From assembly GCA_038496445.1 (NCBI GenBank), contig JALMLS010000210.1, positions 62,001-126,000 on the forward strand: a stretch of DNA of 64,000 bases, written 5' to 3'. Each line of letters starts with the position of its first letter. Position 1 is the first letter of the stretch. The notes under the pieces are model-generated. The model saw nothing but the letters and a program-made list of their open reading frames with translations. It made no database searches and was not told the DNA's origin. Below are positions 2,767 to 62,159 of this stretch, in pieces. This DNA is from Trichosphaerium sp. ATCC 40318 (lineage: Eukaryota > Protista > Tubulinea). A program made the position numbers and the translations under genes.

Positions 2767-3570
2767 TTACAGAATCTTCGTGCTAGACATTGTATTAAAC
2801 ATGTCCATTAGGCCGTCTTTCATACACAGTAAACAAGTTCCATCTCGAGTTAAAAATGCTTGTTGAAAAGTCTTGGACTGAAAAGCGTTAATCGGAGCAT
2901 CATAGTCTTTAGGCCACTGTTGGTCCGTGGCCACTAGCTCCACTTTACTGTTTGTCACTTTTCTGATACTGATCCATCTCCTCAACCCTTCTGTAATGAA
3001 AATAGCTCCATTTACTTTCAATCCCTGTATCTCAAACTCTAAGAGGCACTTCTTGAGCTGTTCAATCACCACATCCGGTACACCTTGACGTCCAGATTGA
3101 AAAATGCAACCTTCTTCGAAAGTCCAAAAACATGGTGCCTCAGGATCAACTGGAGTTTGAAGCTTCCCACTTGTTTGAAACTCCACTGTTGAGGCTAGTT
3201 TTATGGGGTCTCTACCACGTACAGCATACTCAAGCTTCCAGCTGTATGCGCCATCTTCTGGGCCATCACCGTCAATGTTATCATATATTTTGTAATGCAC
3301 ATAGTACTTGGACTGTTTACAAAAGTTTTTCCAAAATACCTCGTAGTGACTCACGTTGTACCATCTTTTACACACTGAAGAAATACGACAGAGGTTTAAA
3401 GGTCCCAGGAGAGTGAATATGGCAAGGAGTTCATCATCTGAGGGTTCGGAGTGGTTTTCCGCCTTAGTTGTTTCGAAAAAAAGTTGTTTTGGCTCCCAGG
3501 GATGTGTTTTTGTCAGGTGTGTTGCTGGAGTGACGACAAGGTTTCCAATGTAGTGAAAGTAGTTGCCCAT
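2767..3570 (-). CDS. Intronless F-box protein with MG N-terminus
   Basis: SDDELLAIFTLLGPLNLCRISSVCKRWYNVSHYEVFWK is an F-box signature. Confidence 0.8.
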   Translation of the reverse strand: MGNYFHYIGNLVVTPATHLTKTHPWEPKQLFFETTKAENHSEPSDDELLAIFTLLGPLNLCRISSVCKRWYNVSHYEVFWKNFCKQSKYYVHYKIYDNIDGDGPEDGAYSWKLEYAVRGRDPIKLASTVEFQTSGKLQTPVDPEAPCFWTFEEGCIFQSGRQGVPDVVIEQLKKCLLEFEIQGLKVNGAIFITEGLRRWISIRKVTNSKVELVATDQQWPKDYDAPINAFQSKTFQQAFLTRDGTCLLCMKDGLMDMFNTMSSTKIL

Positions 3571-5619: not shown

Positions 5620-6285
5620 CCAATACATTTCTGTCCTAATAACCAGCCACATCTAGAGCTCTGTACAACATTGCGTGTTGAAAACAGCAGAAAAGTTGAC
5701 ATTGAAGTCAAGAATTGAGTAGTAATGAAAATATGAGTTTGCTTTAGTCAATGTACTGGTATCATCATCTAAGTATGCTCCTTTTATCATATGAGAAGTG
5801 AATAACAGCCGTAGGTACTCAAAACTAGAGTCCGTTGTGGCTAGAAAGAAAGTGTTAGTTCCATTCAAAAAGGTATATGTACCTTGAGTCGTCTTCAAAC
5901 AGCAGAAGTTGTTGGAATCTCTGATTCATTACCTGTGAAGTTAGTGAATGTCGTCCCCTTGGCGTTTATGGAACTGGTGGAATTATGTACACGCTTTTTG
6001 GATCGGAGTGATATGAATGGATCGTTGTGAGAGATGATGTATTGATGAACACTAAAATAAACGGTTTAATTTGCTTATTCACAAGAAAACTGTAAAGGCG
6101 AAACACGCAATAAATCGTTTGTTGTAGCTTTGAGAGCAAATAAAGCGCGATAAGCTTCACATACTGTTGACATGCTTCCAATATCGATGTAGACGCAAAA
6201 TTAGGTCGTGTACTAACCTGCCAAGCCAATATATCTTCAAGAATCTGTTTTTTCTTCACAAACAGCTAGTCTCAAGTGCATCAAA
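5620..6285 (-). pseudogene. Deleted, transposon-interrupted copy 1 of the F-box/G-alpha-like gene
   Basis: Matches the 3' end (about 11630-11820) and 5' part (about 13040-13450) of copy 2, joined across a ~1.2-kb deletion near 5890. Upstream homology resumes at about 11030, after the transposon. Confidence 0.8.
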
Positions 6286-8045: not shown

Positions 8046-8958
8046 ATGAACAAACTGTGGACACTAGATTACGTGTCCAATTGGAAGTGTCACGCACAAA
8101 CAGGAGTTCCTAAATGGGCACTAAAGCATGTCTATTACAAATACTTGGTAAAGACAAAGTATACTCAACGTGAAATGTATCTGGTATATAGATACATTCA
8201 TGCGTACCCAACTTGGCGTAGATTGGATGAAATTGGAGTAAAGTCACAGCCATATTTTCTTGAAAACTTGGTTCCGTTGATGCACTTGATGGGAGAAGTC
8301 CTAGATGAGATTATTTGGGAAGAACGTTTGTAAGTTCACAACACTTTGCAACTTTATAAATTTATTTTCTAGAAATCCCTTCAATCATGGGGAACACTTC
8401 CCATACAGAGTAACATGTATTGTAGATACATTACCTGTGCGCATAAACAAACCAAGCTTGTCCGCTATTCGCTCCCGATTTTATTCGGGTAAATATAAAG
8501 ACTGTGTTGTGAAAGTACTCCTCGGAGTTTCTTTTTTAGGCACTATCTTAGTCTTCTCTTCTCCTCATTTGGGTACGCTGTGGGACGGGTATATATGGAA
8601 TAATGCCATAGCAACACATCCAACCTTTGATTGGGAGGTATTTCTAGGTGACGGCGCCTTCAATGTGATTCCGGGCAACGAGCACTTTGTTCTACCCTAT
8701 TCAACTGGTAGGACAAGAATACCACTCACAAGGGCGCAAAATCGCTTTAACGCATTGATGCAAAACTATCGTGGACGTGTTGAGCATGTGAATGGGTATT
8801 TCGATAGACACGGAATGTTTAAGCAACGTTTTCGCGGAACATTGTACGTGTTGGAGTCGTGCTTGTATATTACAGCACATACATCCAACATAGTTCTAAA
8901 GCGGCGACTTAGATACAATCCTATTGGTCCCTGGCCTCACCACGAATGTGCACAATAA
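8046..8958 (+). CDS. DDE transposase (DDE_Tnp_4, Harbinger/IS5-like), ~289 aa, one intron at 8330-8372
   Basis: Splicing gives WEERL-NPFNHGEH in frame. Motifs CIVDT, FYSGKYK, LWDG, LGDGAF and FN..MQNYRGRVEHVNGYF provide an intact D-D-E triad. Confidence 0.92.
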
Positions 8959-11024: not shown

Positions 11025-11567
11025 AAAAACAAGATTGTCGATTTACTTCAATTTTAGTTTTCTCTCTTTCGGGTATTTGCGTCCCTTTGTAAATGCTTTA
11101 TCACGTGATAGGCTTTAGTGTAGATTATATCGCACGTGTTCCTGTTAAAACATAAGTTATACATTGTTTGGGCACCAATTAGAAGTTTTGCCTAGCAAAT
11201 TAAATGTTTATCAGACCTAGGACTAGCACAGTGTAACACTACTTCTTCCCCCAAGCTCAAGACAAGGGTGAGACCTGGCTTGGCAATTTTCTTGAGAAAG
11301 TAAGCCATCGACAGTGACCCACAGAAGAACATAGTTGCACGTTAAGTACTCGACTGCTATTGTACTTGGTACGTACTAATGCTTACCTTTTCGTCGCAGG
11401 TATATTGCTAGCATGGCGTCAATAGTAAATATGGGCTCTGCTGTTACAAACTTTTATAAACTTCTAGAAGTGCTGATCAATTTAAACGCTCAAGATGTCA
11501 AAATATGAGTAAGCATAAGTCTTTATTAATATTGGTTTTAACTTCGTAACAATTAATTCCATTTATC

Positions 11568-13488
11568 CTAATAGCCTAAAGCTGAGGAAAGCAGCATTTG
11601 TCTGATAGCTTTATCACAGTTGTCTTTGAAGTCAAGAATTGAGTAGTAATGAAAATATGAGTTTACTGTAGTCAATATATGGGTATCATCATCTAAGTGT
11701 GCTCCTTTTATCATATGAGAAGTGAATAACAGCCGTAGGTACTCAAAAATAGACTCCGTTGTGGCTAGAAAGAAAGTGTTAGTTCCATTCCCAAAACGAG
11801 GAGTATATGATTACCTTGAGGGCAATCTGGGAACTTCTCACAGAACTCAGTAGGTATTAAATGGTCGTCTTTGTAGATAAATATAGCGATCCTAAAAATT
11901 TGAGTTTTATCAAGGATGTTACACCACAGCGAGAACTCATGTATTGATTTGTGTAGTTTTGTGCCAAAGATAGGATCAGGTATACGGTATTCACCAAGTA
12001 CAATGTTGTAGAATATTGAGCAACAATCTTGTACAACATGGGAAGCTTTTCGGAATAGTGTGCGAGATATTGAAGGGTACATTTTAAATCTATAAAAAGG
12101 TATAAAGCCCTATCAATATCAGCTTTTGTTCTTACCGATAGCTAGTAAAGGAGATAATACTAATATAATCAAGAGATTTGTCAGTATGTAGAAGTGTACA
12201 AGGCATGTTTTCAATATGTTCTGGTATCACTATGTATTCTTTATCCAGTATCATTGAAGCAGCTTCTTCGAAACTATCACATTGTTAGTGAGACAAACAC
12301 CATGGCATCCAAGAAAAACCAGAAAACCCGTACTATTTGGCTCGCTCATCATCCTCAACATCAATTGTATCAAGGCCTTCAGCAATCAGTTTTTGAGCAA
12401 CTGAAGATTTGATTGCCTTTGCACATTTACTCTAGATATCATGTGTAAGTTGTGGTGTAAGTTTAAAAAGGTGTTGTTCGATACCTGAGGATTGTGTTTT
12501 GATGCCTTCAAAGTAACAGAAAGTGTGTACTTTTGAATACATTTCTTGAATGGAGAAAAGTCTGGTGTCACTATCGACCTTGCAAATCCTCCAAGACACA
12601 TGTGCACGTTGCCAAGGAAAATGACATCTAGAGTGTGATCTATCTGCTTGTTTACTGATTTAAGTTGTTTGTGGATTGTTCGGTCAGTTAAGTTTTGTTG
12701 TTTCATTCTTTTCTTCATGTGGTTTGTGTACTTTAGTTTGGGAAGTGTCTTCTGAACCGCGTATGGATTCAAACCGGCTTTATAATACTTGTTTAAAAAT
12801 GTATATGTTCTAGATCTGCTCTTGATAAATCAACAGTAAGTCATAAACAGATAATAGTAGAGTATCAAAAAAATAGCCCAACTTACTCTACTGACTTCAA
12901 AGAGCCATGTGAATTGACTCTGGCAATACTTCGCGTACGGCTTTGCTGTTTGTGATATCGTGAGAATACATTTGTCATCTAGAAAGCTTATCACATGCCA
13001 TACAATCTCAGTTGGTAGCTCTACATATCAAAGTTATTTCAAACAGCAGAAGTTGTTGGAATCTCTGATTCATTACTACCTGTGAAGTTAGTGAATGTCA
13101 TCCCCTTGGCGTTTATGGAACTGATGGCATTGGTGGAATTGTGTATGCGCTTCTTGTATCGGAGTGATATGAATGGATCATTGTGAGAGACGATGTATTG
13201 ATGCACACTAAAAGTTAAACGTTTTTGTTAGGCTGTCGCAAGAACTGTAAATCGTATAAAACACGCATATTAATGTGTATGCGGTATATCTTTGAGATTG
13301 AATAACGAACAAGCGTTACGTACTGTTGACATGCTTCCAATATCGATGTAGACGCGAAACTAGGTTGTTTTTTGACCTGCCAAGCCAATATATCTTCAAG
13401 AATCTGTTTTTTCTAAACAAACAGCTTAGATCCTAGTCTAAAGTGCCAAATCAACCTTTCGCAATACCAAGATGTCGTATGCTTCCAT
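11568..13488 (-). CDS. F-box + degenerate heterotrimeric G-alpha-like fusion, copy 2
   Basis: F-box FTELPTEIVWHVISFLD, followed by colinear G-alpha-like segments: DRTIHKQLKSVNKQIDHTLDVIFLG, DDERAKYFEE..ILDKEYI, QDCCSIFYNIVLGEY, KLHKSIHEF, IAIFIYKDD, FCEKFPD and C-terminal AIRQMLLSSALGY. Confidence 0.75.
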
Positions 13489-14393
13489 TACTTGACTGTG
13501 GTTTGCGGTATTGACTTTATTTGTACACACAAGATTGTAGATTTACTTCAATTTTACTTCAATTTTAGTTTATTTGCGTTCTAGATCACGTATTCAAATA
13601 AAAACACTAAGTTGTGGCTTTCAGCGCAGCAAAAACGAAAGGCTTTAAAATATTTGTTGCTAATCAGCTTTTATTCGAGATTTTTGCTGTTGGTGTAATT
13701 TACAGAAAAGCCACAGCACTGGGGTACACGTGGGGTTGGTTGACACTTGTTGGAGCTAATTACGAACAAGGACAACTCGAAATCAAGAAAAGTTGGCTTA
13801 TTTCGGTCACCAGAGCACGTGAACTGTGCTTTTAGCAAAATTTCGCTTTTTTCTTGAAACTGAATTTGCTGAGCATTCTCTTTTTTGTTTATCTCTCTAG
13901 AGACAATTTAGCCGTAAGTGATGTCTGATATCTGAACACTCTTTAAGTCTGTTAATTTGAAGTGCATTAAAGCAAGCGATGAATCGTAAACTGCCAATAA
14001 CAAACGTTTCCAATTACTTTGGTAGTGCAGACGAAATGGTAACCCTCATCATAGAAGAAAAAAAAGAAAAAGCAAGCTACTAAAAAGTATGTGCAAAAAA
14101 GAGATACAATAACGTGGTTACTTACCGAGACCTATTTAGTTGTTTGAAAAAACAAAAATTTTTGCAACAAAAAAGAGTTGTAAAAAAGCACTGAATGCTA
14201 AATGGGTCTTTCGAAAGCCCTCATTGTCAAAAGATGTAGGCCCGAAAATTTGAGTCTATTAGGACAATTTCTGCATATCTCAGTGCCCCTTAATTATGAT
14301 CCACTAAAGGCGCCTACAGTCAAAATATGAGTACATATAATTCTTTTATTAATATTGGTTATATCTTAAGTTGTAACATTTCGTTATCCCTAT

Positions 14394-16326
14394 CTAAAAC
14401 CCAGACGCAGATAGAGCGTTGACCATCATAGCATTTTGGAGAGCACCAAAAAAGTTGCGTTCGAAGTCAAGAATTGAGTAGTAATAACAATACGAGTTTG
14501 GTGGCACTGTGCTGTTTTCATCATCTATATGAGCCCCTTTAAACACATAGTTCAAGAACAGTAGTTTCAGGTACTCAAAAATAGAGGACATAGTGGCTAG
14601 AAAGAAAGTGTTAGTTAAAGAGCTTGTCCATTGTCCGTTCAAAATAGCAGGTTTGAAAACAACAAAAAAGGTGTAAAGGATTACCTTCAGGGCAATCTGG
14701 AAACTTCTCACAGAACTCACTAGGTACTATATAGTCGTCTTTATAGATAAATATAGCCATACTACAACCTTGAGTTTTGTAAAGGATGTTACACCACAGC
14801 GAGAACTCATGTATTGATTTGTGTAGTTTTGTGCCAAAGATAGGATCAGGTATACGGTATTCACCAAGTACAATGTTGTAGAATATTAAGCAACAATCTT
14901 GTACAACATGGAAAGCATTTTGGAATAGTGTGCGAGACATTGAAGGGTACATAGTTAACCTACAAAATATAAACACCAAATTGCTTACATAATTTTTCTT
15001 ACCGAATCCTAGTTCTTTCCATATCGCTAATGTATTCAACGGGCTTATCAGTATGTAGGAGTGTACAAGGCATGTTTTCAATATGTTCTGGTATCACTAT
15101 GTATTCTTTATCCAGTATCGTTGAAGCAGCTTCTTCGAAACTATCACATTGTTAGTGAGACAAACCATGGCATCCAAGAAAAAACAGAAAAACCGTACTA
15201 TTTGGCTCGCTCATCATCCTCAACATCAATTGTATCAAGGCCTTCAGCAATCAGTTTTTGAGCAACTGAAGATTTGATTGCCTTTGCACATTTACTCTAG
15301 ATATCACGTGTAAGTTGTGGTGTAAGTTAAAAAAAGGTGTTGTTCGATACCTGAGGATTGTGTTTTGCCTTCAAAGCAACAGAGAGTGTGTACTTTTGAA
15401 TACATTTCTTGAATGGAGAAAAGTCTGGTGTCACTATCGACCTTGCAAATCCTCCAAGACACATGTGCACGTTGCCAAGGAAAACGATATTCTGTATATA
15501 CTGCTGTTTTTTAAGGTGAGCATAGATTGTTCGGTCAGTTAAGTTTTGTTGTTTCATTCTTTTCTTCATGCGGTTTGTGTATTTTAGTTTTGAGAGTGTC
15601 TTTTGAACCGTGTATGGATTCAAACCGGCTTTGTAATACTTTTTTAAGAATGCATATGTGCTAGCTCTGCTCTTGATAAATCAACAGTAAGTCATAAACA
15701 GATAATAGTACAGAGTATCAAAAAATAGCCCAACTTACTCTACTGACTTCTAAGAGCCATGTGAATTGACTCTGGCAATACTTCGCATACGGCTTTGCTG
15801 TTTGTGATATCGCGAGAATACATTTGGTATCTAGAAAGCTTATCACATGCCATACAATCTCAGTTGGTAGCTCTAAAGAACAAAGGAACAAGGTTATTTC
15901 AAACAATAGAAGTTGTTGGAATCTCTGATTCATTACTACCTGTGAAGTTAGTGAATGTCATCCCCTTGGCGTTTATGGAACTGATGGTATTGGTAGAATT
16001 GGATCCACGCTTCTTGTATCGGAGTGATATGAATGGATCATTGTGAGAGACGATGTATTGATGCACACTAAAAGTTAAACGTTTTTGTTAGGCTGTCGCA
16101 AGAACTGTAAATCGTTTGTTGTAGCTTTGAGAACAAATGAAGAGCGATAAGTTTCACGTACTGTTGACATGCTTCCAATATTGATGTAGACGCGAAACTA
16201 GGTTGTTTTCTGACCTGCCAAGCCAATATATCTTCAAGAATCTGTTTTTTCTAAACAAACGGCTTAGATCCAAGTCAAAAGTGCCAAATCAACCTTTCGC
16301 AATACCAAGACGTTGTATGCTTCCAT
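14394..16326 (-). CDS. F-box + degenerate heterotrimeric G-alpha-like fusion, copy 3
   Basis: High nucleotide identity to copy 2 (offset about 2.82 kb), same exon layout, C-terminus ALQNAMMVNALSASGF. A small deletion near 16110 may disturb an early exon. Confidence 0.72.
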
Positions 16327-16890
16327 TACTTGTCTGTGTTTATGGTATTGGCACTTATTCACGTGAAGGATTTACTGCAATTTTACTTCAATAGTTTTCG
16401 CTAGGTTTTCTCACGTTTTCGGGTATTTCAAATTTTTATACGCCATATCACGTGATATACCTTTTTAGTTGCTTACATTGCTTGTATTCACTATAAGTTG
16501 TAGAAATAGCAAAACGGTAAAGGCTCAAAATACTGTTTATTTATTGCTCAGCTTTTGGTGATGCCAAAACTAGCATTGGAATTGAAACACCGTTGTACCT
16601 CGCCCAGTATCTCGTTATTTTGAAAGTGCAATCGAAAGGAGAATCTCAAACCAACAAGATACAACTGTTATTATCTCACTATGTCAAACACAATAAGTGG
16701 GTGGTATTAACATTTTTGCGGCTTTTGGTACGATTTTGCAGAATGATTTGGTATCCTGTTTGTTTGATCACGTGATTTCCGTTTACATGTATTCGTAATT
16801 TCAACATTCACATTTTTCTGGAAGTAGCAATGGTTGACCATAATAAACTGAGCGTTTTCCCATCAATTCCGGAACCAACGACAACTAGCC

Positions 16891-17995
16891 ATGTCAGAGC
16901 CAAAATCTAAGCGTGTAAAAGTTGATAAAAGTCCAGCAGAGACCATTACTTACGGTTGTGGTGACTTTTCGTTTTGTCTAACACGTGAAGAGCTCAACCA
17001 CTATCTTTATTCGCTCGCAAACCTCACTTTGATGAGAATTCAGAACAGAGAATCCAATAGTAGCTTTAGAGGAATCGGAGTGCGCAACAACCAGCGTACA
17101 TCATGATATCTAGCTAGGTACAACGTAGATTCTCAAAAAGCCTTCCTGTTCTTGTGTCAATGATAAAAACTGGCACAACTGAGAAAGAGGTATCAGATCT
17201 ATTCAGCGTTGTGTTTGCTGCAGATTATTATGGCGTATTGTACGTTTGTTAGTGGGGTTTTTTTTTTGTCAATGTCTAACATTAGAAGTCAGGCAAACGG
17301 TGGTGTGTTTTCTACTTATTATAATTACAAAGACATTGACAATAGCATTGTAAATTCAGAAATGAGTAGAAGAATCTTTCAAAAGTACACAGAGTCTCGC
17401 GTGAAGATAGTGAGTTCATTTCCTTTAAAACAATAAGAACTAATTTGTTCGTTAAGCCTAGCTTCCCTAAATACAAAAATAGAACCTCTGTCGGAATATG
17501 TCTAAGCTGGGGTCATGGTGACATCAGTCAAACGTTCTTTGAGAATAACGTTGAAGAAGCAATGAACGGAAAGGTTCCGGATACACATCCTACGGTACAA
17601 TTTTTTTTTCGTTACAGCTGCAAGAGTACTTTCAATTGAACTAACATACTCTACACCTTGATGTATGTAAACTGTGCTAAATGAATGTAGCTGAAAAATT
17701 GTGGGCAGCAGCTGTTGGTGCATGTTGGCAGGACATTCGGAATACAATTGATAAAAAAATATGGAGCAGATGTATGGTAGCATCTAAAGAGGGTAAAGAC
17801 ATGCTCACTGTTAACATTCACCCACAAGAAATGGAGCAAACAATCTATTTCCAGCCCTTAAATCATGATAACAGAGGCGTCCATAGCAAAAAGTCAGAAC
17901 TAGACATTACCTTGTACGTTAGAGAATCGGATACTCGCTTTCCTAATACTTACATTTTTTTCTGTCCCATAAAGAATGAGTGTGACACAAGATAG
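16891..17995 (+). CDS. Probable BTB/POZ (KCTD-like) domain protein, multi-exon; may be degenerate
   Basis: N-terminal ITYGCGDFSFCLTREEL and later FLFLVSMIKTG...VFAADYYG resemble BTB start and end motifs. Exon joins not fully resolved. Confidence 0.45.
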
Positions 17996-18012
17996 ACTAT
18001 GTATTTTTCTGA

Positions 18013-19557
18013 TTACATACAACTACACTTGCGTTTTGGATGATGATTGCCTTCCTTACTAGTAAATCTTGAATACAAACCCATCATTGCTGCAGTGGTA
18101 AAAGCATCATTAATGTTGGTTGACAGTTTACCACTATGACAGTACTGAGTACTAGGTGTGTTCGTCATTTATTCCTACCTTGTCTCAAAGAATGAAGCAC
18201 CAACTTCCTTTGCCAAGGCAACTCCTTCTTCAATGGACACTTGTCTACGGTGTACCAAATCAATCTTGTTTCTACACCCAAAATTAGAGATTTCAATCAG
18301 CTAGAATAAGGTCGTATCATACCCAATTATCAATAAAGGGATTTTCGGTACATCGGCATCATTAAAGTACTATTGAGATGGTTATTTTTTGTTTAATTAC
18401 TTAATTACCTTTGAATGGCTGATATAGTCAATTAATTTCTGTACTTCTTTGAATGATGCACGTGATGTTATAGAATATACAATGATATTCATAGTCTACA
18501 AACGAAAATAAAATCCCGTAATACAGTCAACCTAGGAAAAAAAAAGCAACAAGAACCGTACCCATTCATCAAACTTATAATCATCGTTTCCATAAATAGT
18601 TTTAGCTGCTGCTTCTGGAAGGATAGGTAGTTTAGAAAGGAAAACTACTGATAAAGCTCTACCTGATGCATCCCAAATTTCTACTAAAACCTTGTTTCCA
18701 TTGACGTCTATCATCTTGCGATAATTGTCGAATTCAACTGACCCAATTCTACTACACTTCAATAAGTTTTTTGAAGGAAAAGACAAAGTGTACCAAGTTA
18801 CATATAAACCTTGAACAAACATAATTGTACAAGTAGTCTTTCCTGTATAAGTAATTAATATGGTAGTATGTTACATTCAATTGTTTACTAAAGAATGGCT
18901 TACCTGAACCCTCCTTACCCCATACCATCATACGGAAAGGCTCTGGCGAGTTACGTTGTTCTTTGATAGCAGAATGTAATATTTTCTTATCAAATTCTGG
19001 GAAATAGCTAACCACGTGATGAGTTGCCATTATAAAACATCTTTTAAAGATCCAATGTGTTCATATACCTGAACCCTGTTGTAGACATTTTGACGATTTT
19101 AAGTTGTGATTTCCAAAAGTGCTTTTTCATTCCTTCATCAGGGTTATCAATTAACGCCTTTTCAATACGCCCTGTACTACGTAAGTAAAACAACACCTGT
19201 CATAAATCTACATACTCAAGTCACCCAGCTCCTTGAATTGTTGCGAAAAAGCAGTCTTCCATAGACTATCATCACAACTATTTTGATTTACTTGGAAAAA
19301 CATACAAACTTTTAGTTCGAGGTACCTAAGCTTGTACAAATCTTTGTTTGTTTGCGCCAACACACAAAGGTCTTGATAAGATACAAACGTAAGAATAAAT
19401 ACAGTAAGCTCTTCAGGTATCGTGCTAAGAACGTTTTCCGCTAAAGGCAGCTCAGATGAATTTTTGGTACTGTTTGCTTCTACGCTGCTGTTTGAAAGCC
19501 TGTCTGCGTCTAAAAATAAAATTAGGCTTGTAAATGATTATAATTAGCATTACCCAT
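18013..19557 (-). CDS. F-box + Ras-family small GTPase fusion with CAAX box
   Basis: F-box LSTIPEELTVFILTFVSYQDLCVLAQTNK..DDSLWK; G1 GKEGSGKT; DNYRKMIDVNG; IWDAS; YSITSRASF; NKIDL; ETSGK; ends KRKCSCM*. Confidence 0.85.
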
Positions 19558-29201: not shown

Positions 29202-32200
29202 CTAGTTCATTGTGCTGTGAAGTTCACGTGCAATGCTTCCAGCATTCATCTTCATTTCTTTCAAAGTAGAAGCAAGAGCACGACTTTCTGCTTGATATTT
29301 ATCAATCTTACTGCGTGTCTTGATGAGATCATCTTCTTCTTTGTTCAGATCCTTCAAGTAACGAGCAACCAAATCTTTTGCTTGTATGTTCTCCAAACTC
29401 TTAATATTCTCTCTTAGACGCTTTTGATTAACAAATATCGTCTTAATATGTTGTTCAAAGGAGGTGATTTGTCTTTGAATCTCACTTTTCTTCGCTTGCG
29501 TTGTGATGACCTTAAAAGGAAAAAAGTAAGAAAAAAACAGGTTCGATGATTGGAGTGCTCTCAGGAGGTGTACCTCTGCTACCATTTTCAATAGTGAATC
29601 ATCCAAGAGAGGACCGCTATCTTGATCAATAGCGGATCCAGCACGCCATCTATGCAAGTCACGTGTTGTGTAACTCTCGCGCGTGACAACGCTAAGTGCA
29701 GCTTTGGTTTCTCCTTTCTTAACAATGTTCTTGACAGTTTGAAATACTTCCTTACTCAAAACACCTACACAAACATACAGTTAAAGAAAGGTTCAAAGAA
29801 GGTACAAATGAAAACTGTTAATGACATACCTTGAGCAATAAGTGGTTTTGCTTGTTGTTTGATAAATGTAGTAAGAGAAGAAACACCATTAACTACTTTA
29901 TCGTATCTAAAAAAAAAAACGTGTCAAAAAACAAGTTCAGTTTCTAATGTTTTAGCTTGTGCTCAATGTCTTTCTTCGCGTACGTTGCTTCTTCAGATAC
30001 CACGAATGTTATCTCTTCTTGTGGCTTGATAGAGAAAGCATAACGAGAAAATCCCATAACGCTCTTTACACAGTTTTCTTCAGTTGTAATAACGAAGCCA
30101 CCAAACTTAACGTCTGCGGTGTGATCAACATAGAACTTGCTGATAGTACGTTCAGTGTTGTTATTCTTGACTACGTATTTAGTCTTTTTGGTACGTCTAT
30201 GTGTAAGTCGGCAACCTACCGCACATGGTCAGCAACTATCAGAAAAAAGCGAATGACGTTATCTGAAAAAAATCTTTGACAAAGCGCTCTTACCTGTTGG
30301 AATCTTATCGCCGGCCAAGTTTTCTGCACTTAAAATCACTACACTCTCACAAATATCGCTTTGCAATTTTGAAGGATTTGTCTAGAACAGTACTTAGCGA
30401 ATCAAAGCTAAAACACGAATGGCTAAGAAAAAAGTTATATTATGGCGTACCTTGGTTACACTAACGGTTGTATCCATACCGTACTGTACAAGTGCGTCAT
30501 CACCAGGTACCATAGGTGTAAACTCATTTTGGGCAACAAAGCGACCACCTTCAAGTACAGAAATGCTTCCAGGAGCAAGAACCATTCCAGTGTTGTTTAC
30601 GAGATGTACTGCACGAATAGCATTGATTTGGCTCTCTTTTGGGTCATACACAAGGACACAAGATCCATCAATATCCAATGAAGCGATAGGAACAAGTGCA
30701 CTAGACTTGCTTCGGATTCTATAACAACAATAATTAAAACTCGACCTTCAAAAGCGAAGAAACGACTTCGAGCCAAAAAACAACTTTTCAGAAATGATTT
30801 TTCTTCGAAAAAGAACATGCACGACAACAATAAGTCAACTTCGAAGAATGAAAAGGTAAGCACGTACGATACTGGTGTTTTGATTGAATAAACAACATGT
30901 TCAGCAATGCCACTTAGCTGTAAGCTATCCAAAGACTCAAAATCTTGATCATCATTTGCAGCTTTTCTGGAACCTCCATCACCACGAAGACGAAGGACGA
31001 GGTGAAGTGTTGATTCTTTTTGAATATTGTAGTCTGATAAAGTGCGTCCATCCTCAAGCTGTTTACCAGCGAAAATCAAACGTTGTTGATCTGGAGGAAT
31101 GCCTTCTTTGTCTTGAATCTTTTGTTTTACATTTGCCACTCTGTCGCTTGGACTGACGTCCAATGTTACAGTCTTACCAGTGAGCGTCTTTACAAAAAGT
31201 TGCATACCACCACCGCCACCGTATGAAGATGTCTTGGCTTGCATTTTCTTGGTTTGGGTGTTAGATTGATTAGACATGAGCTCAAGTTCATTTGCGACGA
31301 GTTTCAATGAAATGTCAAGCCAGTCTTCATGAGTTGGGTTCTGAACAATGTCAGTACGATTATATAAACGGAGATGCTCTGAAAAGCGCGTGTGATACGT
31401 ACATTAACTTGTCCAAAGATAGATAAAGGATGTTTGGATTGTTTAGTAGCTTCTTCAGCAGCAGGAACTTCAATACGGTACGAGCACTTCCACTCTTTTG
31501 CTTCTTCGATGTACGAAGCCCATACATTGTTATCTTGTTCCTTTTTCTTTTCTTTCGCGCCTTCATTACCAGAAACACGAACAAGAATTTGGGTCTTTCC
31601 AGTAGCATGCTAAACACGTGGGTGAGTTTTTTACGGATTTTATGGATTCTGTGGATTTTTATGGATTTTTATGTTAAAACGTACTTCAACTGGTCTTTTT
31701 GCTGTGAATTGCTTTGTGAGGAATAGTTCTAGCTCTTTTTGGAGCTTTTGATCAAGCATTGCAATAGTTACGACGTCTCTCAAACGAACGCTTCTTATGA
31801 CAGTAGATTCCTTCTCGGAGCATGCCATACGCAGAATATAACCGTCTTCAGTGGTTGCTACCCTTTAAAGAAGAGATTTAAGAAAAAACGACTCGACAGT
31901 TTTAAAAATAAAACGTACCCGTTGTTACATGGTACAGTGAACTTGTGAGACTCTACAAGCAATACTTTGCCGCTAAAATTATCAGTTGAAGTGCTTATCT
32001 TTACAGAGCATCCAACACAAGATCTGAGGAAAGCTATAAACGTATTGTTAGACACAACGAAGAAAGTTTAGTCAAAAACGCCGAAAAACGGTTTAATAGT
32101 TGATCAAGTGGTGGTTGTGTACCATTCAAGTTAGTGGCGTGGCTGAATCTATAATTGTGTGTTAATAAGACGGCTTTTGGAGTTTATAATTAGGAGCATA

Positions 32201-32492
32201 CCTGTAAGTCTCTGTGACCACTTTACGTGTATCTCTGGATGCAGCATCGGCTAAATCAGTATCGTAGCTAAAAGCGATTAGGCGATAAAAATAAAAGCAA
32301 TCAAATGTACCTAATGGTTACTTCACCAGGAGCGTGTACGCTCAGAGTGTCTACAATGAGCTGTTTTCTCGCTATTGGTACAGATAGACTATACTCATTC
32401 TTATCTTCACTAGACAACGCTGCTTCTCTCTCAAAATAAGCCAAGTCGTTCTTGTAGATAGTTACACGCTTTAAATCAAGATTTGATGTCAT
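29202..32492 (-). CDS. DUF4140/DUF4139 family protein with an internal ubiquitin domain
   Basis: N-terminus [16 protein letters not shown]; [20 protein letters not shown]; [19 protein letters not shown]; C-terminal coiled coil [12 protein letters not shown]. Ubiquitin at 31205-30978. Confidence 0.85.
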
Positions 32493-33262
32493 TTCCGGTT
32501 AAGATTTTTGTGTTATGTTTAAAGACTCTGACAACTATCAGTATTGCATTCTCTTAATAGAATACTTCTCACTTAATTGTACCAACTAGATCATCCACCA
32601 ATTGACTATATATGTGTAAGATTGTTTCGTTTTCCTGTTTGCAACTAATATGTGCACACGTGTCTTTTTTTTTTTTGTTCAACTTTTTTTTTCAACTTTT
32701 TTTTACATGCACGACTTTCCCTTCCTTGAACGCCTTTATACCACATGTACTTCTGTCCAGCTTACAATCACTTTGTTGTACATCTAATATGTAGACACTC
32801 TTATTCCAAAAGCTTGAGACGGACTGAGGAAGAAAAACTTCATAACACAATTTTGTATAGCAGGCTTTCATACACTATTACGCGATCCAGTACCTAACTC
32901 CATACCGCGTTCGCCAGATCAAAACAACTATTTATTAAGGGAAAGCTTTCGGTATATAGGGTAGCTCCTACACCGATGGCAATAGATTTATGGATACTTG
33001 CAAGCAGGTACAAAAACATACAATACATATGAATAAGAATGATTGAAGTTAGAGCTTATTTGCCTGCTTTTGATATCTATGGTGGCATAAATGCACATTG
33101 TTATATCACGCCACTCGAAACAAGTACCAAAGTCTGTTAGTACGTTTTTTAATAGCATTAACGAACAGTTCTGCTAGCTATCAAATTCGGCACTATACCT
33201 TTTCTTTGTGGAGTGGAGGGAGACTCACGTTGTCGGGTAGTGCTATGACAACAAAATCGATA

Positions 33263-33451
33263 TTGTGGTGGTACGTTGCAAGCAACAGTACTCCACTAAC
33301 TCATCCGGCAAGATGAGATTAATACCACAAATCCCATGTATAAAAATTTGTACGTTCTAACGCCATTTCGGCGTTGAAGAAGAACATGGTAATACTACAC
33401 TTGATGAACCGCAAAAAGGAAACCATTTGGTTGCACTACAAGAGAAGTGAT
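33263..33451 (-). ncRNA. Candidate structured RNA with U2 snRNA-like motifs
   Basis: Colinear ATCACTTCTC, CCTTTTTG, ATCAAGTGTAGTAT and TGTTCTT, then a hairpin, Sm-like AATTTTTA and two 3' hairpins; intergenic. Confidence 0.4.
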
Positions 33452-33855
33452 TGCACCTCGCGGGACAGGGTTGAATTTTAGTCAAAAAATCGAATTTTAG
33501 TTTTCTCCAACACGTTCCTAAAAGTTGTGGGAAAAACTTGATAGATACAATATTGACAAAGCGTTAAAAAGTGGTACAACACTGATCTCAGATTTGTAAC
33601 CAACATACAAGTGTATCATCATTTGACAATCTCGTTGACTTGTCAAACAATTCACTGAAAACCCGCACTCGTTGAGTGGTTACCTCTGAGCGATGGTACA
33701 CTTTTCAGAAAAAAGTAAAGCGCACTGTAGAGCAAAGGAAATAATAAACTCTGATTTGTGGAAAGAACTTAGTTCGATAGAATAATGTGACAATTTTTTT
33801 TTTACAACAATATTTGTTTTTTTCTTATTTTTCGTTTTCTTTTCTTCCATCAATC

Positions 33856-39869
<6,014 letters not shown>

Positions 39870-57072: not shown

Positions 57073-58122
57073 ATGGCACGTGTTGTATGAAAAAAAATAC
57101 TAAGCAAATTCTAGGATAAGGAACCAGGTTTATTAAAATTACCAGTAGAGCTTCATCTTGATATTTCAGACTTAGACACTGAAGTTTACAAAAAGTTACC
57201 ACTCTTGTGTAAACAAACCTCTCTCGTACGTTATGATGCGAGTCTATTGAAACATGGTCTGTGGGTTGCGACATTACAGGAGGTAGTGATTAAAAGCCAA
57301 CACTGGGATCATGGTAAACGGGAAGATCAATACAAGAGGTGGAACGAGAATGGAGAATTGCGGAAACAGATCAATTACGTTAATGGCAAAAAGCAAGGAG
57401 AATGGAAGAAGTGGCATGAAAACAACCAATTGCGGGAACAGCGCAGTTATGTTGATGGCCGAAGGCAAGGAGAATGCAAGAGGTGGCATAAGAATGGGCA
57501 ATTGTTCGAACAGTTCAACTACATTGATGGTAAGCGACAGGGAGTATACAAGAAATGGCAAGACAATGGGCATTTGGAGAAGCAGTGCCACTACACCGAT
57601 GGTAAAAAGCATGGAGAATGTAAGACGTGGTATGATGGCAAATTGAGGAAACAATGTAGGTATGTTGATGGCAAAAAGCAAGGAGAATGGAAGAAGTGGT
57701 TTGAAGACAAATTATGGATACACGACAATTATGTCAATGGTAAAATGCATGGCGTATGCAAAAGATGGTTTAGTAATGGCCAATTGAAGCAACAATATAA
57801 TTACGTAAACGGTGAAAGACACGGTGAATACAAGGAATGGCTTGAGGATGGTAAATTGGAAGAAAAAGGCAATTATGTTAATGACAAATGGCATGGTAAA
57901 CGCACAAAATGGAATAAGTACGGCAAATTATTAGTACGTTGCAATTACCAAAAGGGCAAATTACATGGGCAATACCAGTTTTATAACAACGGTTCATTAG
58001 TAGAAAAGCACAATTATTTTGAAGGTAATATGCATGGGATATGCAAGAAATATACTTTGAACATGTGGGAATCGACGCAGTGCAAGTTCATTCATGGTAA
58101 ACAGCAAGGAGAATGGGAGTAG
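57073..58122 (+). CDS. F-box + MORN-variant repeat protein
   Basis: Frame extends upstream of the called ORF to the acceptor at 57114: DKEPGLLKLPVELHLDISDLDTEVYKKLPLLCK (F-box-like), then about 11 MORN_2 repeats. ATG at 57073. Confidence 0.8.
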
Positions 58123-61800: not shown

Positions 61801-62159
61801 TTTGCAAAATCTCCTATTCCGCATTCTCCATCGCCAGCCTCAGGTGGTCCTCCTTCGTTCTCTGCGCCTAGAAAACCTCCTCCATTTACAGCTAGTAACC
61901 CTCCTAAACGTCCACCATCAAGCGCACCTCCAGGATCCCCAAGACCGCCACCTAGGTCGGCGCTTCCAAGGACAAAATCAGTGTATCCGTATGAAATGTT
62001 GTATGATTTCTTGTTTTAACTTTATCCCTTAGATCATCGAAGTCACCTCCGTTACCTCCACTACAACGTACAACATCTGCAGATCGTCAAGCAGATTTGG
62101 CTATTGCTATGGCTTCGAGAAATATAACATCATTTGTGTCTCAGTTGCCAAAACACTGA
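58816..62159 (+). CDS. Ankyrin + DH (RhoGEF)-like + PH + proline-rich protein
   Basis: EGNTVLHIA (ankyrin); helical DH-like region; LFNDVL..AFEV..FIF..ERDEWFDAI (PH); Pro-rich tail. Confidence 0.7.

Follow-up and report, generated by a model that had tools for sequence, protein, structure and literature searches.

Two tandem, spliced F-box genes of Trichosphaerium sp. with a C-terminal domain that likely descends from a G-alpha subunit

The locus described here raises the question of whether a G-alpha subunit can lose all of its nucleotide-binding motifs and persist as the domain attached to an F-box. It lies on contig JALMLS010000210.1 of the protist Trichosphaerium sp. ATCC 40318 (assembly GCA_038496445.1), in a stretch of 64,000 nucleotides (nt) at positions 62,001 to 126,000 of the forward strand, which is called the window below and whose own numbering is used throughout. 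An earlier note, made from the letters alone, had placed at 11568-16326 a tandem family of F-box proteins fused to an apparently dead, full-length G-alpha. We consider it probable that two intact and transcribed copies at the locus, together with one deleted relic, belong to a lineage-specific gene family that duplicates in tandem and joins an F-box to an eroded G-alpha.

The tandem family proposed in the note is borne out by a duplication on the minus strand and by two intact spliced models. The unit at 11497-13563 aligns with the unit at 14319-16392 with 83.8% identity over 2140 columns, and a spacer lies between the units (outer bounds 11497..16392). The two minus-strand genes have seven coding exons apiece, and all 12 introns (six in each copy) are of the GT-AG type, with lengths of 43-88 nt. 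Splicing of the models, a check suggested in the note, leaves the open reading frames (ORFs) of both copies intact, and the peptides that it quoted are all found by translation on the minus strand at the places it gave. The models were assembled by hand and then checked by script, and coding length is counted from the first supported ATG. The features, all on the minus strand, are as follows.

11568..13101: copy 1 coding region, 399 amino acids, stop TAG at 11570-11568 (model and GT-AG check)
14394..15961: copy 2 coding region, 396 amino acids (model and GT-AG check)
13101-13080, 13020-12887 (F-box), 12820-12485 and 12431-12334: copy 1, exons 1-4
12273-12136, 12089-11815 and 11764-11568: copy 1, exons 5-7
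15961-15940, 15872-15739 (F-box), 15671-15351 and 15296-15199: copy 2, exons 1-4
15140-15003, 14959-14685 and 14596-14394: copy 2, exons 5-7
15739..15872 in copy 2, 12887-13020 in copy 1: exon 2, the F-box exon (Pfam F-box models)
15351..15671 in copy 2, 12485-12820 in copy 1: exon 3, with linker, alphaN-like helix, beta1 (IVFLG) and dead P-loop GNVHMCLGG
14685..14959 in copy 2, 11815-12089 in copy 1: exon 6, from beta3 to the FPDC motif, with LGEY and KLHKSIHEF
14394..14596 in copy 2 (tail SASGF), 11568-11764 in copy 1 (tail SALGY): exon 7, the alpha4-beta6-alpha5 equivalent

The F-box exon and the G-alpha-like exons form a single spliced, expressed transcript. The expression evidence consists of spliced contigs of two public runs (library kind not on record) that match the stretch minus its introns; joints were scored by CT..AC ends on the plus strand, equal to GT..AG on the gene strand. 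All predicted junctions between the 5′ exon and exon 7 are present in such contigs, exactly at the predicted boundaries, and one contig of 347 nt links exons 3, 4 and 5. The note had allowed that transcripts might assign the F-box and the G-alpha-like exons to separate genes, and the contigs place both in one transcript. Several of the joints pair a coordinate of one copy with one of the other, since the contigs are short and the paralogs hardly differ in these parts.

13020 to 15940: intron 1
15671 to 15739: intron 2, between the F-box exon and exon 3
15296 to 12485: intron 3
15140 to 15199 and 15140 to 12334: intron 4
14957 to 15001 (cut +2): intron 5
11764 to 11815 and 14596 to 14685: intron 6
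13207 to 16162 (CT..AC ends): a further 5′ intron

In contigs of one run (X2), stretches of 20 and 27 foreign letters coincide exactly with two of the patches where the copies differ (joints 15491 to 12659 and 12090 to 12160). These joints indicate at least one further expressed paralog, differing in the same patches as copies 1 and 2.

At the 5′ end, the main reading frame is open through upstream exons, which are listed here for both copies (minus strand).

16326-16294 in copy 2 (MEAYNVLVLRK), equivalent to 13488-13456 in copy 1: possible first coding exon
16250-16162 in copy 2, with verified donor ACA/GTACGT, equivalent to 13412-13324 in copy 1: upstream exon
16067-15940 in copy 2, holding the ATG at 15961, equivalent to 13207-13080 in copy 1: next exon

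The verified 5′ intron, of 94 nt, joins ...ATGTCAACA/GTACGT to the exon with ATG 15961. The end at 16326 given in the note corresponds to an upstream ATG that needs two extra introns; of these, the contigs show the one of 94 nt, but no contig of the two public runs shows the other, of 43 nt (16293-16251), which leaves the first 76 residues tentative. Translation could start at 16326 in copy 2 (13488 in copy 1) if the 43-nt intron is removed, and otherwise at 15961. An ATG is also present at the verified donor ATGTCAACA/GTACGT (16162-16170 and 13324-13332, minus strand) and gives, once spliced, an upstream ORF of 12 codons from ATG 16170; this ORF applies unless translation begins further upstream, at 16326 or 13488. 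Searched against Pfam, the two upstream exon pieces gave no match.

The N-terminal domain is predicted to be an F-box by a statistically significant profile match. Exon 2 alone matches three Pfam F-box models (of the PF12937 and PF00646 types) over the same 38 residues: in copy 2 with E 9.3e-5 and 22.6 bits for the F-box-like model and E 9e-4 for the F-box model, in copy 1 with E 1.9e-4 and 21.6 bits at best. The scores of 22.6 and 21.6 bits lie just under the Pfam gathering cut-off of 24.3, and the piece searched does not include the first positions of the profile, whose codons span the exon 1/2 junction.

The remainder of the protein was compared with a reference set of real G-alpha genes, fetched from metagenomes via a G1-motif DNA pattern, from which 45 full-length ORFs were extracted. 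As in G-alpha (PF00503), an alphaN helix, beta1, a SAKYF..DYIP segment, a stretch from beta3 to LSEY, a NRMHES-type helix, beta5 with xKxD, FPDY and an alpha5 tail follow one another colinearly; identity to the best-matching G-alpha is about 22% in 240 aligned pairs. The best local matches of exon 3 fall on alphaN/beta1 of G-alphas, and the tails end in Gly-aromatic (SASGF, SALGY), as do many protist G-alphas of the fetched set (..GSGF..). The family differs from G-alpha in all five nucleotide motifs, as the note had claimed. G1 (GxGESGKS in G-alpha) reads GNVHMCLG, with the P-loop Lys and Ser/Thr missing; no clear RxxT (G2) is evident in the spliced proteins; G3 DVGGQ is replaced by YPSIS or YPSMS (the latter in exon 6 of copy 2); G4 NKxD reads YKDD. 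At G5, TCAT aligns to YSIL (YSILD for TCATD in exon 7), and the SILD of the note was one residue off. With G1-G5 all degenerate, no canonical GTP binding or hydrolysis is therefore expected, and the domain is not a member of the G-alpha family in the functional sense. The N-terminal MGC lipidation site is also missing, because the F-box precedes the domain. Nor is the domain a full-length G-alpha, as the note had it: beta1 and the SAKYF-type motif are about 75 residues apart, against about 115 in real G-alphas, and the putative helical insert is about 40 residues short. What stands of the proposed fusion to a dead G-alpha is the architecture in one transcript and the loss of the motifs; a G-alpha profile match is absent, and the ancestry is likely only.

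Three partly independent tests speak for this ancestry. The top-5 Smith-Waterman score against the 45 real G-alphas exceeds that of 298/300 shuffles for one copy and 300/300 for the other. BLAST high-scoring segment pairs gather on the diagonal anchored at the C terminus (7-8 of the 18), where their bits total 151 and 171, compared with 10-13 on average in shuffles; the concentration has p 0.008 and 0.002 (1000 shuffles), and reversed sequences score 0. Among 90 real ORFs taken as decoys, the two that come close are G-alpha fragments, and the other 88 reach at most 77 bits on the diagonal.

The third test, the position and phase of introns, is independent of similarity scores. In the fetched G-alpha genes, introns occur at 40 phase 1, 54 phase 2, 101 phase 0 and 155 phase 2 (13 loci), and further at 198 phase 2, 241 phase 0 and 293 phase 1; these reconstructed sites reproduce the classic G-alpha sites. 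Intron 4 of the family splits the Tyr codon of RAKY/F after "TA" in phase 2 (donor side at 15199..15200 in copy 2 and 12334-12335 in copy 1, minus strand), and is base-for-base the 155 phase 2 intron found in ..SAKY/F.. of 13 real genes, the second most frequent site in the catalogue compiled here. In alignments made blind to introns, intron 5 (phase 2) maps to 196-198 in seven of the ten that cover it and intron 6 (phase 1) to 291-295 in all five, mostly to 294, so that both lie 0-2 codons from the G-alpha sites 198 phase 2 and 293 phase 1. Of these three introns, one thus sits at an identical position and two at nearly identical ones, all in the phases of their G-alpha counterparts, and the exon sizes between shared sites are similar (138 vs. 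129 nt, 275 vs. 284 nt, and ~197 vs. ~190 nt, family vs. G-alpha). By random placement of four introns, such concordance has P ~0.001-0.003. The gene structure, as given by intron positions and phases, is shared with G-alpha.

Profile methods give no such signal: the resemblance exceeds chance only in the pairwise, diagonal and intron-position tests and is below detection for all of the profile methods. The profile check against PF00503 suggested in the note did not recover a G-alpha by any of three routes. Pfam on the exon pieces returned the F-box only; our own hidden Markov model (HMM) of the 45 G-alphas scored 0.8 and -0.3 bits on the spliced proteins (shuffle p 0.07 and 0.13); and hhalign, local and global, stayed at chance against column shuffles (z 0.6). 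With the G-box columns of the HMM masked, copy 2 reached p 0.02 but was wrongly placed, and copy 1 had p 0.16. A phmmer search of PDB with exons 3, 5, 6 and 7 singly found no G-alpha chain even at E 10. Neither the semi-global pairwise alignment to the G-alpha set nor the segment-placement test was significant, nor was the hydrophobicity cross-correlation anchored on introns, except for exon 6 of copy 1 (p 0.03). A profile of exon 6 run against 1.84 billion representative proteins met three spurious repeat proteins only, and the family is therefore absent from that protein library. AlphaFold on exon 6 alone, from a two-row alignment, gave a useless model (predicted local distance difference test score 42.8), and the ESM Atlas feature search with exon 6 gave no usable match. 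The profile, PDB, placement, hydrophobicity, exon 6 fold and Atlas results weigh against a G-alpha origin; the family profile, made of two near-identical rows, is almost without depth. The failure of the profiles is weak evidence against descent, because such profiles heavily penalise the loss of invariant catalytic columns and because the family profile has only those two rows.

Read at face value, the chance-level profile and profile-profile tests, the lack of a relative in the protein library and the non-significant hydrophobicity and placement tests would describe an orphan, fast-evolving domain of 310 C-terminal residues unrelated to G-alpha, in which the likeness of motifs is made by the reader and the match of introns by chance. 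We regard this as unlikely, since it has to meet three partly independent tests, each at p ~0.001-0.01, a diagonal score that real decoy proteins never attain, and an exact codon and phase match at the second most frequent G-alpha intron site. Origin from a small GTPase of the Ras/Arf type is suggested by a gene for an F-box and a Ras-like GTPase on the same strand at ~17.9-19.5 kb; however, neither this gene nor the other neighbouring F-box genes have sequence similarity to the family, the ~120 residues from beta1 to beta3 are too many for a small GTPase, and the introns in common, like the SAKYF, LSEY and NRMHES-type blocks, are specific to G-alpha, which leaves that origin very improbable. 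Because the three positive tests point the same way, one of them from separate information, that of the introns, descent of the C-terminal domain from G-alpha is held to be likely, although not proven; its basis is the gene structure together with weak colinear similarity.

The divergence between the two copies is mosaic, as seen from the identities along the genes.

Exon 4: 100%
Introns 3-4: 96%
Exon 6: 92%
Exon 5: 84%, with the last part divergent
Intron 5: 60%
Exon 7: 65.5%
Non-coding 3′ flank: 69.5%

Over the whole coding sequence, the ratio of nonsynonymous to synonymous divergence (omega, dN/dS; Nei-Gojobori) is 0.56, below 1 at p 0.003, and selection is purifying overall. Exon 7 has dS 0.82, dN 0.38 and omega 0.46 by the same method; in the central part dS is ~0.05-0.08, and in exon 6 omega is ~1.0. 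The note was right that the tails diverge while central exons are near-identical, but its diversifying partner specificity is not supported, given omega 0.46 in exon 7 and an equally diverged 3′ flank; at this omega, positive selection on the tails was rejected. With dS 0.82 and omega 0.46 in exon 7 and the flank diverged to the same degree, the mosaic looks like an old duplication, under moderate constraint in the tails, followed by homogenisation of the 5′ and central parts, for which gene conversion is the simplest explanation. The three indels of exon 7 are all in-frame and without a stop despite the high dS, and the frame so kept argues for a translated, constrained product. Four patches vary most between the paralogs: alphaN at its end, the segment ahead of beta3, the alpha3-beta5 loop and the exon from alpha4 to alpha5; we take these to correspond roughly to the receptor-facing side of G-alpha, as in textbook receptor-G-protein complex structures.

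A third copy, found by blastn and tblastn, is a relic.

5694..6267, minus strand: relic third copy

Its exon 7-like stretch (5694-5888, 91% identical to 11618-11820) is joined straight to a 5′ region (5894-6267, 82% identical to 13038-13426), with exons 2-6 deleted. It adjoins a PIF/Harbinger-type element whose transposase ORF (8305-8958) has a DDE_Tnp_4 domain. The relic and the exon 6 omega near 1 show relaxed constraint, a point against the main reading. Taken further, the deleted relic beside a transposase, the omega values of ~1.0 in exon 6 and 0.56 overall and the loss of all catalytic motifs could mark the two copies as expressed but functionless, decaying duplicates, that is, transcribed pseudogenes in a region rich in transposons and F-box genes. 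This we find improbable, with both ORFs intact over 1.2 kb, a tail exon at dS 0.82 that has no stop and in-frame indels only, omega below 1 (p 0.003) and accurate splicing.

The rest of the window was surveyed for its context. It is rich in F-box genes and in lineage-expanded adaptor-type genes, and its ubiquitin-family and CHD1-type genes, ordinary conserved genes, confirm a eukaryotic nuclear context.

78-794 and 57205-58122, plus strand: two MORN-repeat ORFs
2767-3570, minus strand: single-exon F-box ORF of 267 amino acids (F-box-like, E 3e-9)
17900-19540, minus strand: multi-exon gene, directly beside the array, for an F-box (stretch ..IPEELTVFILTFVSYQDL..) and a Ras/Rab-like small GTPase, with G1 GKEGSGKP, G3 WDASG, G4 NKID and a CaaX-like end CSCM
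30597-31307, minus strand: ubiquitin-family ORF with an N-terminal extension
32325-32468, plus strand: best tblastn match of real G-alphas in the window (E 0.003), in the alpha3-beta5-NKxD region, with an in-frame stop and TRQR for NKxD; weaker, non-colinear matches at 31778-33652
33856-39034, minus strand: exons of a CHD1-type chromatin remodeller, with SNF2, chromo and CHDCT2 domains

The match at 32325-32468 may be a decayed G-alpha relic, or chance.

The closest precedent found for a fusion of an F-box with a G-alpha-type domain is TbFRP of Euglenozoa, a protein with FYVE, F-box and Ras-like GTPase domains, in which the F-box was linked by its authors to ubiquitylation and rapid turnover (PMC3593210). 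There too an F-box stands upstream of a domain of the GTPase superfamily in a protist. TbFRP has, however, a small Ras-like GTPase and a FYVE domain, whereas here the domain is G-alpha-like, the nucleotide motifs are lost and FYVE is absent. In full-text literature searches, no report of an F-box joined to a G-alpha-type domain, or of an F-box pseudoGTPase, came to light, and a search on F-box, heterotrimeric G proteins and Naegleria had nothing of the kind among the top titles. No F-box was found upstream of the 45 metagenomic G-alphas.

Plant extra-large G proteins (XLG) and other pseudoGTPases have G-alpha- or GTPase-derived domains in which nucleotide binding is weakened or lost, and act as scaffolds. 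By description, the domain of the present family would be like the XLGs as a nucleotide-weakened scaffold probably derived from G-alpha; XLGs are still recognisable by PF00503 and are without an F-box. Engineered mini-G proteins are man-made G-alphas with a reduced helical domain that serve as nucleotide-independent receptor-binding modules. They lack the entire helical domain, whereas in the present family the putative helical region is reduced but not lost, and binding to receptors is pure conjecture.

F-box proteins choose their substrates through the attached domain. In the family described here, the F-box would dock the protein to Skp1 in a Skp1-cullin-F-box (SCF) ubiquitin ligase. The ~310 residues that follow most likely represent an eroded G-alpha, in which the alphaN helix, the Ras-like core and an alpha5-type tail are kept and the helical domain is shortened. 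Since all five nucleotide-binding motifs are lost, this part would act as a nucleotide-independent binding module, not as a switch, and would be the substrate-recognition part of an SCF substrate receptor. Assembly into SCF, and recruitment of receptors, G-beta-gamma, regulator of G-protein signalling (RGS) proteins or effectors, are putative.

A bolder proposal, which we find improbable, makes the pseudo-G-alpha a lasting "empty-pocket" mimic: it would dock onto activated seven-transmembrane (7TM) receptors, or onto 7TM-RGS proteins, and pass them on to SCF for ubiquitylation. Each paralog might then fit a receptor of its own, and gene conversion would be tolerated in all other parts of the gene. 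A variant would make the domain a decoy that traps bacterial effectors targeting the host G-alpha. The empty-pocket mimic, if true, would be an arrestin-like route of desensitisation built from a G protein.

As this family illustrates, conserved intron positions and phases can betray the ancestry of a dead enzyme domain that has eroded past detection by profiles. If the reading is true, the family would show, in nature, a G-alpha put to new use as a scaffold free of nucleotide, and a G-alpha serving as the substrate-picking domain would link the parts of heterotrimeric G-protein signalling directly to the ubiquitin system.

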